From contig MU008156.1 in the NCBI GenBank assembly GCA_010909165.1, forward strand, positions 973,768 to 1,037,767: a stretch of DNA of 64,000 bases, in the 5' to 3' direction. Numbering within the stretch: the first letter of the stretch is position 1; the number at the start of each line of letters is the position of its first letter. Shown here in pieces: positions 880 to 36,275 of this stretch. Made by a program: the position numbers and the translations under genes. The notes beneath the pieces are model-generated. The model did not search any database. It was given only the letters and a program-made list of their open reading frames with translations, and was not told the origin of the DNA. This DNA is from Anthoceros angustus (Eukaryota; Plantae; Anthocerotophyta).

Positions 880-1699
880 TCAATGCAGAGGAGCATATCC
901 TTTCTCCTTCTCCCGCTCCCTGTCCCTGTCCCTGTCCGTGCGGGGATCAGGCACGACGACAGCCAGCACAGTGAACCCAGCCAGCACAGCCAGAACCAGC
1001 CCCAGCAGATTAGCCAACATGGGCTCAGCGTCGAAGTGCTTCGCCTGGCCCCGGAGCTGCAGCAGCGTCACCTTCTCCAGAATCCCGGTCTCGGCGGCCA
1101 GCACGGCGAGCGCGTACAGGCCCAGACCCCCAATGGCGTGCCAGGGCAGGAATCCGGCCCGGAATCCGGGCCCGGCCCCGGGGTACCAGAGCACGCAGAA
1201 TCCCCCGAGCCAGTGCAGGGAGAGCAGGATCCCAACCCCCAGCCCCACCCACGAGTGCAGGCTGTAGAGGTTGTCCTTGGGCGGGGAGCTCTCGTTGTGG
1301 GCGCGGAAGGCCGCCCAGATCCCGACCCACCCCAATCCCAGCGCCAGCAGCTGCATCCCAGGTGGAAGGCCTTGCGCTGCCGCCGGCTCCTCCCCGGTGC
1401 GGTGCACCAGCGCCGCCTCCCCGCCAGGACCACGAACCCCGCCATCGCCAGCACCGGGTGCACGTTGAACACCAGGGCCGTGTTGCCTCCCCGCCATGCC
1501 AGCCCGCCCCGGTAGCGGAGCTTCCAGAAGAGCGCGAGCACGAGAGCCGCCAGGCCCAGGAGATGCACCACCAGGGCCGCCAGGGCTGGGAGCAGGGCCG
1601 GCCCCACGCGCTGGGCCGCCGGGAGATGGCTCCCGGGAGAGAGCCCGCCGGGGCTGCCGGTGCCCGCCGCGCCCGCGCTTGCCACTGCCCGCTGCCCAT
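880..1699 (-). CDS. Cytochrome b561 (ascorbate-dependent transmembrane reductase family), intronless, with apparent 1-nt frameshifts
   Basis: Two overlapping frames combine into b561 motifs: FNVHPVLAMAGF, RKAFHL, AAFRAHNES, NLYSLHSWVG, LPWHAIGG and ETGILEK. Frame breaks fall in G-runs at ~1695, ~1420, ~1393 and ~1358. The start ATG at 1699 is inferred. Confidence 0.85.
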
Positions 1700-1941
1700 C
1701 ACCTCGGTTGGGAGCGAGACATCTGGATTCCGGAAAGAGGACCTGGGAGCGTTGTTGACTGGACACAGCTTGAAGAACCCAGTATGGAAGTGGCAGGGAT
1801 GCCACGTTCTGGGCGTGGACGTGGCGGGATTTGCCACTTGGCTCCGCTTCTGGAGCGACCTGTGGATGTCATGGATCCGGTGCCGGAGCCTGGGTTCCTG
1901 TCGGGAGGATCTGGGTTGCCGTGGCTTGCAGAGTGCTGGAG

Positions 1942-3016
1942 ATGAGCAGCTGCCGGGGCTTGTGGAGGGCCTTCTCTGTCTCTTCTGGGCGTCAGGGTCA
2001 GAAATCTGGCGGGAGGGTGAAGGAGTTTCAGGTGTATCGGTGGAATCCGGAGATGAGGCAGAAGCCTTACATGCAGTCTTACAAGGTGGATTTGGATGAC
2101 TGCGGGCCCATGGTATGTGGAATGGGTGGTGGGTTTTGGGTGGCAGGAAGGAGGGAGGGAGAATTTCTCGTGCTGAAAGGGGAGGTTGTGGGTCTTGGGT
2201 TTGGCAGGTGCTGGATGTGCTGCAGAAGATCAAGGCCGAGAAGGATTCGACTCTTGTGTACCGGAGATCATGTCGGAGGGTGTGTGTGGGTCTTGTTCGA
2301 TGAATATCAATGGGACAAACACCATTGCTTGCCTGTGCCCGGTGGATCCTGACCCCAGGACGGTGACGACCATTACCCCGTTGTCCCACATGTTTGTGAT
2401 CAAGGATCTGGCGGTGGATTTCACCAATTTCTACAACCAGTACAAGTGAGGTTTTTGGATGGAGGTTAACTAATGCTATGGAGAACAATTGTGTCTGGAT
2501 GGTTGTGGTGGATCTCACCGGATGTGTGTTGCAGGACGGTGGAGCCGTGGTTGAAGACCAAACGAAGTCCTCCGGAGGGACGAGAGTACCGCCAGTCTCC
2601 AAAGGAGAGGAGGAAGCACGATGGATTGTATGAGTGCATCTTGTGCGCTTGTTGTAGCAGTGCCTGTCCGTCGTATTGGTGGAATGCTGACAGTTTCCTG
2701 GGCCCGGCTGCGCTTCTGCATGCAAGACGGTGGATCAGTGACTCGTATGTTTCTCTCCAGCAAGCCATAGCTTGGTAGTTTTGAATTCTCTTAGACTTCT
2801 CACATTTGTTTTGGTGGAACATGTGCACTCAGGCGGGACGATTATGGCAAGGAACGAGCACTGGCTTTGACGGAGGGTGACAAGCTTTACCGTTGCCACA
2901 CCATCATGAATTGTGCTCAGGTTTGTCCCAAGCGCTTGAACCCTGGGAGGGCCATCTCGGAAATCAGGAAAATGCATGTCGAAATTGCTGTCAAGGATCC
3001 CAGTGTGCTGCTTTAG
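1942..3016 (+). CDS. SDH2: Mitochondrial succinate dehydrogenase iron-sulfur subunit (4 exons)
   Basis: Motifs: [21 protein letters not shown](R)[26 protein letters not shown] and [16 protein letters not shown], with all Fe-S cysteines present. GT-AG introns start at 2113, ~2445 and ~2746. One G is missing at ~2276 (REG). Confidence 0.95.
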
Positions 3017-3058: not shown

Positions 3059-5895
3059 TTAAGCCCCTGCCTTCCGGAGCAGAATCAGAATAGCGAGAAG
3101 TCCTCCCATGTTGGGCATCCAAGCTCCTATGAATGGGTTGACCAGATTTAACTGCAGAACGACAGCCTTGATGTAACACTAGTCAAGCAAGATAGACAGA
3201 CAGGTTCTGAAAAAATTCGAACTGTGAGATGCATACCTGGCCGAGAAGGGCTCCGCAAACATTGACTACATAGTAGCTGAAGACTATAGCAAGCATCCAC
3301 ACGAATCCGACCTGCACTCCAACAGATCAATGGTGGTAAGATGGCAAGAGATTGCTTGTGGCCTGCCTTATGAAGAAAGTGTAATGCACCGAGGCGGTCA
3401 GCAATTCTGGGAAGCACCATGTGTCGCTTCCGTGGTAAGCTCAGGCTGATCAGAGATCCAACTACCCCAAAGACCAGGCAAGCGAAGGGAAGGGCCATCC
3501 TCTGATGGAGCTTCACCTGCGGCAAACACATGTTTTTACATGCAAGTATGAATTGGTATCCAAGCGTAACATCTCGTTGCACGTTAACAAGAAGTGATAC
3601 GCGTTTGTCTCGTACCTTCAGCTTTCTACTCTCACTGAGGTTCCTACTTGCATCCAGTAGCTGCTGCAATTTGATCACCTGCACTTCTTCCAAATTGTGA
3701 AATGAGCATTTTTCGACGGACAGTTCAGAGAGACCAGAACAAGCGATGGAACCACCTCTTTGATGGTCATGTCATCAAAGTTTCGTCCATTCTGTAGTTT
3801 GGCAAGTTCCAAAGGTGCCGACGTCAGTCCTCGGAAGTCTGCAATTAGAAGCAAACAAGTACGGTGAGCAGAAGGGACCTGTACAAGTGCAACGGGACAG
3901 GAGAAATTTCAGTGACTGACTCACATCTTACGTCGAACTGGCACACAGATTGCAGAGAGTATGTAGCCAGATTAGGTGGAGAGTTAAGGGCAGGTATGTC
4001 ATCTTTGCAAGGTGCATCTGACTCAGTTATCCCTTTGCTACAGCCACCCCATAGAATATCATATTCTGCACCATTCTTAAACATCCAAGCATTCCTACTT
4101 GCATCCCACGTCGAGGACTCAGCGACCACCACTCTACGTAATCTGATGCCTGTAAATCACACAGTTTGTACTCAGCAAAATAGTTGTTTTCAGCTTTGCC
4201 TACCATCTTTTTTCTGAGCATCCCCTACAGAATTCTAATTTCAAGCCAACCTTGTTTGCGGTCGCCAGATCTGCAAGGTAACAAGGAGACGCTGGGAGAA
4301 TCTACCGCCTGATGATTCCACTTGTTACAAAGCATTCAGACAGACCTTTCAGCTATACAGAAATGACTTTCATTCAAACTTTGGTCAAGACGCATGTCAT
4401 ATCCAACACAGCTCCAGCAACAGCACAGGACAGCAGCAGCGGCAATACCTGCATCTCAAGAAGAGTTGCCTTCAGCAACAGTTCACCAGCAAGCCTATGA
4501 GCATAGAACAAGTGACACAAGCTGCCCTTCCTGCAGCCATACGAGCCGCAGCTTCTAACGCACTGGACAAGCTCATGTACTGAACACGAAAAATAGGGCA
4601 AAGATGAAGCACTGATTGTTGTTCAAGAGGAACGCAGAGTCTATGCCATCCCCGTTGGGATACCTGTAGTTCAAGTAGATAACTGGCTGTGGGGGCATCT
4701 TCAACTTTACCTGTGGACATTCGACAAAACAATAAGGGCTCCACCCAGGAATATTATACAGAACTCCTCACCTCGGCCCACACTCTCATAGCAGGTGGTC
4801 TATTCAGCTACTCCAACATGGCACCTTAAGGCTAAACATACCTGAGATGCGTCCTTTCCCTGGACGTTGACTTCAGCAGCTTCTGACTTAAGATGTTGTG
4901 CATATCTGTTTGCTTTAGGAATCACACCCTGTGAACATGCAATGCTGCCTCTATCAGGTACGCGGTTCAGTGACTGCCACTCAAGTCTGTCCCCAATAAA
5001 CCACCAAACTAGCACCTCGGTGAGGAAGAGATGACAAATGGTCACTCCAGCAAACATCACAAGTACTGGCCGGACCAGTCTCCAGGCCGTCACTCCACAG
5101 GATCTGAGAGCTGCATTATTGGTTGCGCATGTCCATAAACCAATAGTCCCATGTACACGTAAGATGAGATTCTTGCCGACCGGAAATGCGGCAAGACTAG
5201 GCAAGGAAGTTGAAGGCTAGCTCCACCTAAAATCTCATTGTCTGCCTCCATGCGTCCAAAGGCAAGCAATGGGGCTAGCAGAGACGCAATCGGAAGGGCA
5301 AATCCAACGTAAACCTGCAACCAAACATCAAACCAGCTACAGTCACCAAGCTGTCCGGGCTCTCTTCAACAGCTAAACAAAGTTCTTCCCAACACTCACA
5401 GGAACTCGCAAAACCAAAAACCGCACAGCAAGCAGCACGCTTGGCCATGAAACTCCATAACTTCCCACCAACGTGCCAAGTTCAGGCCCCGCACCTGATA
5501 CCACATCCGAGGATACCATCTGTAAAGACGTCACATCATTCAGACCGCCATAACTGTACATGCACAGGCGTCATCTTACCCATGAAAATCCCCATTGCAG
5601 TAGCTGCAGCAACTCCAAGAATCATAGGAGGAACAAGCTCAGCTAAAATATAACTGTCCAGCAGAGGTATGCCATGTGCTCTGACATCAATGCACAACAA
5701 CGACTCCCTTCGAGTGACTGAAGAGGTAATCCCCTGTCTAGACGAGGATCGTAAGACAGAGACATCCAGATGCTTGCACGCCAAACTCCTGGAATCTGAT
5801 TGGAGACTAATCCCCATCGTCCGGTGCACAGTGCTGAAGCAGTGGGCAGAAATGGGCAAATGTGGTGCCAGAGATGGCTTGCTCAGAGCCCACAT
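3059..5895 (-). CDS. LptF/LptG (YjgP/YjgQ) family permease, cyanobacterial type, ~13 exons, with a putative plastid transit peptide
   Basis: Spliced motifs in order: LLDSYILAELVPP, RVP-VYVGFALPIASLLA, DNEILALRSCGV, EGVIPKAN, LFYA, VVAESSTWDASRNAWMFKNG, NFDDMTI, KLHQRMALPFACLVFGVVGS, IVFSYY, NPFIGAWMPN. Last exons are 3516-3418, 3311-3237 and 3151-3059 with GT-AG borders. The N-terminal ~75 aa are Ser/Thr/Arg-rich. The 4449/4150 junction needs one extra G. Confidence 0.88.
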
Positions 5896-28167: not shown

Positions 28168-30019
28168 ATGGCTGGCTTTGATTCTATTCTGGTTGCCGCC
28201 TGCCTGGCCGTCATGGCTGCCTCCGCGCTTGCTCTGGACCTGTCTCCCAGCTACGGCCGCCTCACCGTCCACAATGCTGGTGGCCAGGTCGTCGTGTGGG
28301 ACGGCTATCCCGAGTCCGCGGGGTTCAATCTTGCCGCCTGGGAGCTCACTTTGAATGAGAACAGCATCAATTTCCCCGGCCACCAGGACACCGACACCGT
28401 TGCCTACGTTGTGGAAGGTGCGAGTCGGCTCGATGTGGCTGTTGCAATTGCGCGGTCTTGTGCCGCAGTGTGTTTTCTTGTATCCGCGTTCAATGGTCTG
28501 GGATGCATGTTTGCGGCTAGAGAACGGGGGATTGTAGAGTGGGAGGGTGTTGATGCAACTGCCGCGCTTCTTGATGCAATGGCTAGACTCGGTGCCTTTC
28601 CTAGCGTTAAGATCTTGCATGCAATGGCTATTCTGTTCCCTCGCATGATCTAGGATCGTTCATGCAATGGCTGGTGTCTTCCCTCGCTTTAGGATCGCCT
28701 GGTCTCATTGCATGTGTTTCTTGCTCACAGGTCAGGCCAAATACGGTCTGGTCATTGCCACCGGCAAGAGAGTTGAGACCAAGACGATCAAGGCCGGTGA
28801 CGTGATTCTCGTCCCCAAGGAAGCAACCTTCTGGTTTTACAACGATGGAACGGGCACGTTCAAGGTCTGGGGAGGCGGTGACACTACCAACAGCCTCAAG
28901 AAGGGCCACATCTTGGTAATTACGCTGCTGCACTGCCTTTGCACCTCTTCTGCAAGCGCACATTTGGCCAGGTGCAAAGATTTATGCAATGTTCCAGACA
29001 TCTTGAAGCTTCCAGGCTAACATTGAGTCATTCTCTCCTTGTCGACGCTGCAGCGAATTGACTCCGTCGGCGCCGGTAGCCTCCTCCACGGCTTCACCAC
29101 GGATGTCTTGGCAGCTGGCTTCAACGTTGACGAGGCCACCATCACCAAGATTGTAAACGCGCAGCACCAGATCAGCCTGGTCAAGTTGGATGCACCTCTG
29201 GACCTTTCTGGCCCGGCTCCCGTTCGTGGGGGAGACCACGTCGAGACCTGGCCTGGACAGGTCGTGTTCCCGCTCTTGAGCGAGGCCCCTCATTTCTCCA
29301 TCGGCGGTGGTGGTGCTCTGTACAACTTGGTGACATCCTACGGCGAGTACCCCGAATTGAAGGCTGTCAGCCTCGGCGTTGAGTATGGAGTGCAGGAACC
29401 TGTAAGTCTATCTTCCTCGCAGCTTGCTCCTTTTTCCTCCTCGACACTTCATGAATTACATCATCGGCTTCTCTCCCACTGGAAAATTAGCCTGACTCGG
29501 ACTGGTGTTCGCGTCGTTTGTCTGCAGGGATCCTTCCTTGGTCCTCTCTGGGCGCCCAACAACCACATGCTGTACTACTTCACCAAGGGAACAGCGCGCT
29601 ACCAAATCGTCTCCCCAGTTACCTCTGAGCTCTTGGTAGACACCGCGGTGTTCCCAGGACAGGTTGTTGCCATTCCGGCACAGTACCCCTTCGTCGTCGT
29701 GGCAGGATCCGAGGGAGTCGAATACTTCACATTTGCCGACAACGATACGTAAGCGTCGTCTAATCTTTACTCTTGTCCTTTTCGGTCGTCACCCAAACGC
29801 TTTGGTATTTTTGGCCTTGACTCAAGTACTTCGATGTCGTCAATGCTTGTGCGCAGGCCCACCGGCAGCAGCTTGTACGCTGAATTCCTGGACTTCCCCA
29901 AGGAGCTTGTGGCTGCTGCCTTCAACATCCCTGTGGACCAGGTGTCCACCTTCGTGGGCAAGCGTGACCACAACATCATCTTCCCTGCGTCCAACAACAA
30001 CATCCTATCCGTTGTTTAG
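28168..30019 (+). CDS. Secreted 11S globulin/glutelin-like bicupin, copy 2
   Basis: MAGFDSILVAACLAVMAASALA-LDLSPSYG. It has the same 5-exon layout as copy 1, high similarity to it, and ends in NNILSVV*. Confidence 0.88.
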
Positions 30020-34654: not shown

Positions 34655-36275
34655 ATGGCGGCGGCCCGAATCGTGCTGGTTGCAGTCTGCCTGTCGCTGC
34701 TGCAGGCCTCGGCGGCAGCCTTGGACCACCTAGACCTGAGCCCGAGCTACGGCCGCAAGGTTATCGACAACGAGGGCGGAGTGGTGGTGGTGTGGGATCA
34801 CTACCCCGACACCGCCTTCCTCAATTTGGCCGCTTGGTATGTAGGCCTGAACGAAGGCGGCATCCAGTACCCGGGCCACCAGGATGTCGATTCCCTGGCC
34901 TACGTCTACGAAGGTCAGGCACTGCAGTCCATTGTATTGCATTGTATTGCGCTGCATTGCATTGCCAGCGCCGGAGCTGTAGCTGCGCATGCGTGGTTTG
35001 ATGCGCCCTATCCCTGACCCCGGCAAACCGCAATGTGAGTCCGCAGGATCTGCAAAATTCGGCCTGGTACTGTCCAACGGCAGGAGCGTGGCCACCAAGA
35101 CCATCAAGGCGGGGGACGCCGTGCTCATACCTAAGGAGGCCGTCTTCTGGTTCTACAACGACGGAAAAGGCATCTTCAAAATCGCGGGGATCGGGGACAC
35201 CACCAGCGGGCTTAAGCAGGGCCAAATTCTGGTACGCGTCCGATGCCGAGTCCGTATCCCTAGTCCGGTTTGGGAGCAATGTCGATTTGATGCATGCTGC
35301 AATGTGTGATTGGCATTTGGCTTATCCACGTCTGGCCTGGCAGAGGATTGATGTGGCCGGGGCTGGAGGGATTCTTCACGGCTTCACCAAGGACGTGCTG
35401 GCCGCAGCCTGGGATGTGGACACGGCCACGGCCACGGCATTCATCCGCGCGCAGCACTCCATCTCCCTCGGGCTCGCCAAGGGCCCGCTCTCCCTGTCCC
35501 CGCCGGACTCCGCGCTCTCCTACGACGGGGAGTTCGTGTTCCCGTTGCTCAGCAGGCCGGCCGATGTGAGCATCGTGAACGGCGGGTCGCTGTGGAACGT
35601 GGTCACCACCCGGGGCTTGTACCAGCCGCTCACCTCTGTGCACCTCGGAGCGGAGTTCGTGCAGCAATTGCCGGTAGGTTTCCTCGGACTCTTTCCTCCG
35701 TCCTCAATGTGGATGCAATGTTGCAAATTTCCTAATGCGATTCCTGAAACGCGTGCTGTGCGCTGCAGGGTTCCTTGTTCGGCCCAGCCTGGGCTCCCAA
35801 CGCGCACATGCTGTACTACTTCACCAAGGGAAGCGCGCGCGTGCAGCTTGTGCGCCCCGTCGACAGCCGCCTCAGTCTGGACACGGAGGTGCACGCAGGC
35901 CAAGTGATCCCCATTCCCAAGCAGTTCGGCTTCGTCATCGTGGCCGGGGCTGAGGGTGTGGAGTACTTCACTGTGGCTGACAACGATGCGTGAGAACCTG
36001 CACCTCCCGTCTCCTCAATTCGATTGTGCCACCGTCTTGGATTGCAGAACTTGCTCTCATCACTGGAAGACTGTGAATTTTGCAGGCCGACCGGCTCTTT
36101 CGTGGCAGGCAAGCTTTCTCAGTACAAAGGCATTCCCAAGGAGATTGTGGCGGAGTCCTTCAATGTGGATGAATCCCTGGTGCGCCAGGTGATCGGCCAG
36201 CGTCCCTACAGCTACATTATTCTGCCCCCTCACGACAATCCCACGGCTCAAGCCACCATTGCCAACGTTGTGTAG
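34655..36275 (+). CDS. Secreted 11S globulin/glutelin-like bicupin, copy 3 (more divergent)
   Basis: MAAARIVLVAVCLSLLQASAAA-LDHLDLSPSYG, PGHQDVDSLAYVYEG, KAGDAVLIPKEAVFWFYN and MLYYFTKGSARVQLV, ending in TIANVV*. Same intron positions as copies 1 and 2. TATA at 34574. Confidence 0.88.

Follow-up and report, generated by a model that had tools for sequence, protein, structure and literature searches.

The current account of lipid traffic at the plastid envelope combines an Mla-like importer, TGD1-TGD2-TGD3, with the LptD-like proteins TGD4 and LPTD1, and nothing is yet known that would drive or supply these barrels. In a 2025 review of plastid lipid transport only TGD4 and LPTD1 are listed as plant relatives of the Lpt pathway (PMC12096540). 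In the literature which we searched, no LptF/G protein from a plant or an alga is reported, and no functional link of TGD4/LPTD1 to an extractor of the LptB2FG type is described. Here we analyse a gene for a protein of this kind in a 64,000-nucleotide stretch of DNA from Anthoceros angustus (contig MU008156.1, positions 973,768 to 1,037,767), which we call the window and whose numbering is used throughout. The gene runs on the minus strand from 5895 to 3059. These limits agree to the nucleotide with those of an initial annotation made from the letters of the sequence, and all the motifs quoted there are present. The protein is a new member of the known LptF/LptG family in an unusual host setting, and the gene is most likely an endosymbiont-derived Lpt permease.

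The described systems closest to the window protein are the LptF/LptG family permeases of cyanobacteria, for instance those of Leptolyngbya sp. JSC-1 (locus L141), Nostoc carneum (L171) and a member of the Gloeomargaritaceae (L215). The homology is collinear over the full length, the layout of three transmembrane (TM) segments, a jellyroll and three further TM segments is the same, the proteins fall in one clade, and the signature motifs DxYIxxELxPP, ALRSCGV, ALPFxC, FSYY and AWxPN are common to them all. The window gene differs from its cyanobacterial counterparts in being nuclear, in having 13 introns, an N-terminus longer by about 53 residues and a jellyroll with about 30 inserted amino acids (aa), and in lacking an adjoining ATPase or LptC/A gene; identity is 27-34%. 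LptF and LptG of E. coli, which form part of the LptB2FG(C) extractor of lipopolysaccharide (LPS), share the Pfam family, the architecture and the coupling-helix glutamate with the window protein. Here identity is only about 20%, pairwise phmmer scores are 16-19 bits, and LPS as the substrate is not implied.

TGD1-TGD2-TGD3 resembles the role which we propose below in being a bacterial-type lipid ATP-binding cassette (ABC) transporter kept for traffic at the plastid envelope, and is a characterised precedent for it (PMC12096540). It differs in that its permease is MlaE-like and not of family PF03739, has no jellyroll and works with an MCE substrate-binding partner; the direction also differs, import towards the inner envelope in the case of TGD1-TGD2-TGD3 and export in the case of an Lpt-type extractor. 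TGD4 and LPTD1 are LptD-like beta-barrels of the plastid outer envelope which are not homologous to LptF/G, and they would be the natural outer end of an Lpt-type bridge. Against this background the LptF/G subunit of the window offers a tangible candidate for an inner-envelope motor, the piece which is still missing. It is relevant to how much of the machinery of cyanobacterial outer-membrane biogenesis outlived the origin of the plastid, and it suggests that part of the bacterial LPS-export machine survives in this organelle. Should orthologues be widespread in algae and non-seed plants, the gene would be an ordinary member of an overlooked family; should they be rare, it would be a notable retention. 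We rate its interest as moderate at present, and as high if partners and a plastid location turn out to be true and the family is uncharacterised across the green lineage.

A split gene for an LptF/LptG-type permease

The exon model was made by hand from the three reading frames and the GT and AG sites. It starts at the first ATG past an in-frame stop (5895-5893) and ends with a TAA at 3061-3059. The predicted model has 14 exons and 13 canonical GT-AG introns of 77-178 nucleotides (nt), nearly all of them with CAG at the end, and its coding sequence of 1461 nt is a single open frame for 486 aa, the two other frames having 27 and 28 stops. The exons have a GC content of 49.7% and the introns one of 46.6%, and that of the gene as a whole agrees with its surroundings.

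Exon 1 (5580-5895) contains the leader, the LLDSYILAELVPP motif and TM1, and ends at the donor G/GTAAGA. The loop and the start of TM2 are found in exon 2 (5400-5494), TM2 and the coupling helix with glutamate E164 (NEIL) in exon 3 (5227-5314), and the ALRSCGV motif and TM3 in exon 4 (5016-5110). A periplasmic-type jellyroll region begins in exon 5 (4842-4928) with GVIPKANRY, and the splicing of intron 4 improves the homology score. After exon 6 (4664-4710), exon 7 (4449-4530) with LFYAHRLAGELLLKATLLEMQ, and a short exon 8 which is discussed below, exon 9 (3925-4142) holds the jellyroll core (VVVAESSTW...NG) together with the insertion of about 30 aa which is absent from the cyanobacterial orthologues. 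Exons 10 (3756-3838) and 11 (3616-3678) lead to exon 12 (3418-3516) with HQRMALPFACLVFG and TM4, exon 13 (3237-3311) with FSYY and TM5, and exon 14 (3059-3151) with AWMPN, TM6 and the stop codon. Counted in residues of the spliced protein, LLDSYIL is at 78, EILALRSCGV at 164, spanning the junction of exons 3 and 4, HQRMALPFACLVFG at 402, FSYY at 442 and AWMPN at 466.

The only difficult place in the model lies between exon 7 and exon 9, where a gap of 299 nt (4150-4448) is about double the size of any of the other introns. Since no single GT-AG intron joins these two exons in frame, a mini-exon or an equivalent is required, and this is the fourteenth exon. The frame is restored by a mini-exon of 20 nt (4251-4270), of 10 nt (4204-4213) or of 7 nt (4346-4352), the last two each with an exon 9 which begins at 4149, and the homology scores are alike (247-249 bits). 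The 20-nt version is uncertain; we prefer it because it has the best acceptor and leaves introns of 178 and 108 nt. The initial annotation had counted about 13 exons which splice into a full LptF/G protein; the full protein does splice, and the count has to be raised by the mini-exon or its equivalent to keep the frame. Three variants of the model were rejected because they lower the score against the hidden Markov model (HMM) of the orthologues: by 10 bits with a first intron of 46 nt, by 23 bits with a shorter exon 7, and by 24 bits when intron 4, which is in frame and stop-free, is retained. Judged from its sequence, this is a real, intact and intron-rich nuclear gene.

Membership of the family was expected from the initial annotation, which had proposed PF03739 (LptF_LptG) as the profile to try. 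Stop-free pieces of the exons match this profile in the order of the gene, at profile positions 56-81 (exon 3), 83-119 (exon 4), 268-299 (exon 12) and 328-353 (exon 14). The best single piece, that of exon 4, reaches 30.0 bits, above the gathering score of 27.9. The NCBIfam models for LptF (TIGR04407) and LptG (TIGR04408) match the same exons at corresponding positions, for example positions 58-84 of TIGR04407 in exon 3. The spliced protein was compared with an HMM made from 90 cyanobacterial orthologues and scored 247 bits (E 1e-77) over HMM positions 21-393 of 395; these orthologues in turn score 290-299 bits on PF03739 over its full length (profile positions 1-353). The matches of the exon pieces and the HMM alignment of the spliced protein together account for the whole domain, and they go well beyond what chance would give. 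When the profile of the cyanobacterial orthologues was run against the PDB it matched only the LptG and LptF chains of LptB2FG structures, and a PDB search with a piece of the window gave chance matches only.

The architecture is also that of the family. Hydropathy gives six TM-like segments (about residues 82-109, 122-159, 177-202, 403-427, 430-457 and 462-481), and the hydrophilic stretch of about 200 aa between the third and the fourth aligns with the jellyroll of E. coli LptF/G, so that hydropathy and alignment together yield the layout given above. Residue E164 stands in the same alignment column as E84 of E. coli LptF and E88 of LptG. These coupling-helix glutamates engage the groove of LptB and were reported to be strictly conserved and needed for the coupling to LptB (PMC5082905). 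We take it from these alignments that the gene encodes a membrane subunit of a type-VI (Lpt-type) ABC transporter.

It should be noted that we file the protein under the LptF/LptG family and not as F or G. The reason is that the cyanobacterial orthologues miss both NCBIfam equivalog cut-offs (160-166 bits for LptF with a cut-off of 230, 177-197 bits for LptG with a cut-off of 240), and that in a tree of 110 rows the clade of cyanobacteria and window protein attaches cleanly to neither the F nor the G group. The exons of the window match the two NCBIfam models weakly, LptF being slightly ahead.

The conserved domain is preceded by a leader of about 73-77 aa in which Ser and Thr make up 26% and Arg occurs 7 times, much as in the initial annotation, where it was a Ser/Thr/Arg-rich leader of about 75 aa. 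Codons 1-73 (5677-5895) are the presumed organelle-targeting presequence, the HMM alignment beginning at residue 74 of the model, which corresponds to HMM position 21. The approximately 53 residues which are extra relative to the cyanobacterial orthologues contain 26% Ser+Thr, compared with 9% in the rest of the protein, 2 acidic residues and 4 Arg; the first 24 residues are uncharged and without Arg. Such a composition would fit a chloroplast transit peptide.

Relatives among the cyanobacteria

Word- and piece-based searches for relatives failed, after which we used degenerate DNA patterns made from the motifs of the window itself. The coupling-helix motif was found at 120 loci on metagenome contigs. 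Of the open reading frames (ORFs) there, the best encode about 800 aa in which an LptF and an LptG unit are fused, the better unit scoring about 104 bits; proteins of one unit scored at most 94 bits. An N-terminal pattern, Y-[ILMF]-x-x-E-L-x-P-P-[LMFI]-x-x-G-V, was run on a collection with one genome per bacterial species and gave at least 120 loci. Among the 120 listed, 92 are labelled Cyanobacteriota and 13 have no label, and an ORF matching the model is present in 112. From the information content of the pattern we calculate that the collection as a whole should contain about 20 matches by chance, and cyanobacteria are estimated to make up only a few percent of its species. Among the matches listed the cyanobacterial proteins score 150-203 bits, the best being that of Leptolyngbya sp. 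JSC-1 (E 5e-61), while Halanaerobiales, Armatimonadota, Methylomirabilota and others reach at most 111 bits per LptF/G unit.

The window protein is 27-34% identical to the cyanobacterial orthologues, which have a median identity of 56% among themselves. At the positions which are at least 95% invariant in cyanobacteria it retains 52 of 76 residues, i.e., 68% compared with an overall identity of about 30%. A protein which has diverged but is still under constraint would be expected to show such a pattern.

The searches which failed give the following picture. The stop-free piece 4803-5216 found only a spurious repeat protein among the protein representatives; cyanobacterial orthologues would score about 22 bits there, and therefore this blank excludes only close relatives (about 60% identity or more over exons 4-5). 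The piece 3151-3771, compared with proteins of at most 362 aa, gave 11 candidates of which none scored, full-length relatives being outside that length. With tblastn against plasmids a window piece, E. coli LptF and a metagenomic relative found nothing, or proteobacteria, Bacteroidota and similar, and no cyanobacteria. An exact 8-mer search of viral contigs with pieces of the window found nothing.

The gene context of the orthologues indicates what kind of permease the bacterial family is. At loci of Nostoc, Calothrix and Leptolyngbya an LptC/LptA-like gene (PF03968/PF06835) is followed by an ABC ATPase gene (PF00005) and then by the orthologue, all on the same strand; examples are L171:2372-4955, L150:1362-3984 and L141:187-2292. 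Of 79 cyanobacterial loci with enough upstream sequence, 56 have the ABC ATPase gene directly upstream and 50 have the LptC/A-like gene further upstream. No second LptF/G paralogue was found in any of the 8-kb cyanobacterial loci. Because of this context we regard the cyanobacterial family as the permease of an Lpt system. LPS transport in cyanobacteria is poorly characterised (PMC7133116).

Two observations on the bacterial loci are added here. At L141:2404-3606 and at six other loci of the Leptolyngbya/Elainella type the lptF/G-like gene is directly followed by an ORF of about 390 aa which has a single hydrophobic segment and matches no Pfam family; it was considered as an LptF/G paralogue and rejected (hhalign probability 0.1). 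Fused LptF-LptG proteins encoded by single ORFs of about 780-860 aa, with the two units head to tail, are common in soil metagenomes (L089, L057, L092, L038, L086, L192; P0002-P0121), and the fused LptFG proteins of Methylomirabilota/Rokubacteria form more than 120 clusters, which at the source are named merely 'LptG'.

The phylogeny was analysed in two trees. In the 110-row tree (quick search, LG+C20) the window protein and all cyanobacterial rows form a clade with a Shimodaira-Hasegawa-like approximate likelihood ratio (SH-aLRT) support of 98, in which the window protein is part of a basal polytomy with the Gloeomargaritaceae sequence and the remaining cyanobacteria. In a more careful tree of 57 rows the branch which separates cyanobacteria plus window protein from all else has a support of 100/100, and within it the window protein is placed beside Leptolyngbya/Pegethrix with 16/54. 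An approximately unbiased (AU) test of the alternative grouping with gamma-proteobacterial proteins rejected LptF (p 0.002) and weakly rejected LptG (p 0.029). The resemblance to cyanobacterial LptF/G, which the initial annotation had noted, is thus borne out by the scores of 150-203 bits and by the 100/100 branch. A position with the Cyanobacteria is here combined with a eukaryotic gene structure, with the caveats of a long branch, limited outgroups and no other eukaryotes. An orthologue from a contig titled Candidatus Sericytochromatia (L243:5939-7102) nests, in the phylogeny, in Coleofasciculaceae next to L136, and the bin is probably contaminated or mislabelled.

Origin of the gene and its possible role

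The reading which we prefer is that of a functional nuclear gene which would have arisen from an lptF/lptG-family gene of a cyanobacterium, in the simplest case through endosymbiotic transfer from the ancestor of the plastid, and from the sequence evidence we give it a probability of roughly 60%. A number of points weigh against it. The terminal branch of the window protein is very long, 2.97 substitutions per site in the 57-row tree, and because of this the placement within the cyanobacteria is tentative and long-branch effects are possible. The trees were made without Chlamydiae, Vampirovibrionia, alpha-proteobacteria, Gloeobacter and picocyanobacteria, the window protein is the sole eukaryote in them, and the non-cyanobacterial sample consists only of sequences which match one of the two motifs. 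The junction of exons 7 and 9 depends on a mini-exon with three candidates which homology cannot tell apart. The 64-kb window contains no LptB, LptC/LptA or LptD gene and no second LptF/G gene. The composition of the leader suggests a plastid location, and would also allow a mitochondrial or dual one. Plastids are not known to contain LPS, and the enzymes for plant lipid A (Lpx), as studied in Arabidopsis, are reportedly mitochondrial. The interpretation of the initial annotation, an endosymbiont-derived component of an Lpt-type transport system in the plastid inner envelope, therefore stands in part: an intact nuclear LptF/G-family gene with an N-terminal extension and cyanobacterial relatives is there, and the accompanying LptB, LptC, LptA and LptD genes are missing from the window.

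If the endosymbiotic reading is correct the protein might work as follows. The Ser/Thr-rich extension of about 53 aa would direct it to the plastid, where it would be a membrane protein of the inner envelope whose jellyroll faces the intermembrane space. Together with another copy of itself or an LptF/G paralogue, and with an LptB-like ATPase encoded in the nucleus, it would form a complex which extracts an amphipathic lipid or glycolipid from the outer leaflet of this envelope at the expense of ATP. Passing through the jellyroll, the lipid could then reach a bridge or acceptor, and its route may end at the LptD-like proteins of the outer envelope, the TGD4/LPTD1 class. Because of the strong divergence (about 30% identity compared with about 56% among the orthologues) the substrate may no longer be classical LPS; this divergence and the jellyroll insertion would allow a changed substrate.

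A bolder version postulates that this lineage keeps a working plastid machine of the Lpt type across the envelope. The inner envelope would contain an LptB2(F/G)2-like extractor and the outer envelope the LptD-like TGD4/LPTD1 barrels, with a jellyroll bridge as the third part, and the cargo delivered to the outer envelope would be a lipid A-like glycolipid or a plastid glycolipid. Such a machine would add to TGD1-3 a second lipid route of bacterial kind, one which has been lost or has gone unrecognised in model angiosperms. We put this forward tentatively and think it rather doubtful.

The same gene, with the same cyanobacterial origin, could instead code for a mitochondrial or dual-targeted protein which exports lipid A-like precursors from the plant Lpx pathway. 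The LpxA-K/KdtA homologues of Arabidopsis are said to be targeted to mitochondria, and a leader which is basic (7 Arg among 73 aa) and low in acidic residues is common to both kinds of presequence. The absence of Arg from the first 24 residues and the high content of Ser and Thr suit chloroplast transit peptides better, however, and the origin of the gene is cyanobacterial and not proteobacterial. We consider a mitochondrial function unlikely.

Horizontal transfer, either from a donor outside the cyanobacteria or from a free-living cyanobacterium long after the plastid originated, would agree with the loose position of the protein within the cyanobacterial clade, i.e., the basal polytomy of one tree and the 16/54 of the other, and many phyla are outside the sample. 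A donor of another phylum has to be reconciled with the 100/100 support for the branch with cyanobacteria and with the large gap in score to the other phyla sampled. A late transfer is at variance with the long residence in the nucleus which the thirteen introns, the targeting leader and the long branch suggest. Together these points make such a transfer improbable.

The open frame might also be a decaying or silent relic which is no longer expressed or no longer a transporter subunit. The very long branch and the identity of about 30% to the orthologues would be understandable in this case, as would the insertion of about 30 aa in the jellyroll, the ambiguous junction of exons 7 and 9 and the lack of partner genes in the window. 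Decay does not agree well with a 1461-nt frame which is open over 14 exons with canonical splice sites while the other frames have 27-28 stops, nor with a conservation which is concentrated in the invariant core (68% compared with 30%) and includes the coupling glutamate. We regard a relic as very improbable.

Bacterial contamination of the assembly, which the initial annotation had already argued against, can be dismissed because the gene is split by GT-AG spliceosomal introns and has eukaryotic genes 42 bp downstream and about 400 bp upstream on the same contig, with a matching GC content.

Surroundings of the gene

In the window the neighbours of the gene are plainly eukaryotic: genes for cytochrome b561, SDHB, a WD40 protein, gamma-tubulin and Exo84, and cupin genes. 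The SDHB-like gene, on the plus strand with its TAG at 3014-3016, is convergent with the LptF/G-like gene. Only 42 bp separate the two stop codons and therefore the 3' untranslated regions of the two genes must overlap. The WD40 gene is divergent and lies about 400 bp upstream of the LptF/G-like gene. Neither an Rfam scan nor a tRNA scan of the window gave a match.

The exon of the cytochrome b561 gene at 883-1497 (minus strand) has two listed matches, a protein from a transcript-like Logan contig (58% identity, SRR33208242) and one from the zygnematophycean alga Mesotaenium endlicherianum (53%); no land-plant protein is among the matches listed from the best 8000 candidates. Such relatives would suit a streptophyte alga or a land plant which branched off early. 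A stop-free frame of 566 codons at 1028-2725 (minus strand) overlaps the cytochrome b561 and SDHB genes on the opposite strand or in another frame. It is rich in Pro, Arg, Ser and Gly and lies in a region of 57% GC, and it seems to be an artefact of composition and not a gene. Two cupin-like ORFs are found on the plus strand at 29039-29749, which is the only one of the two to reach the Pfam threshold for Cupin_1, and at 35035-35904; they are about 6 kb apart, have similar N-terminal halves and are probably tandem paralogues.

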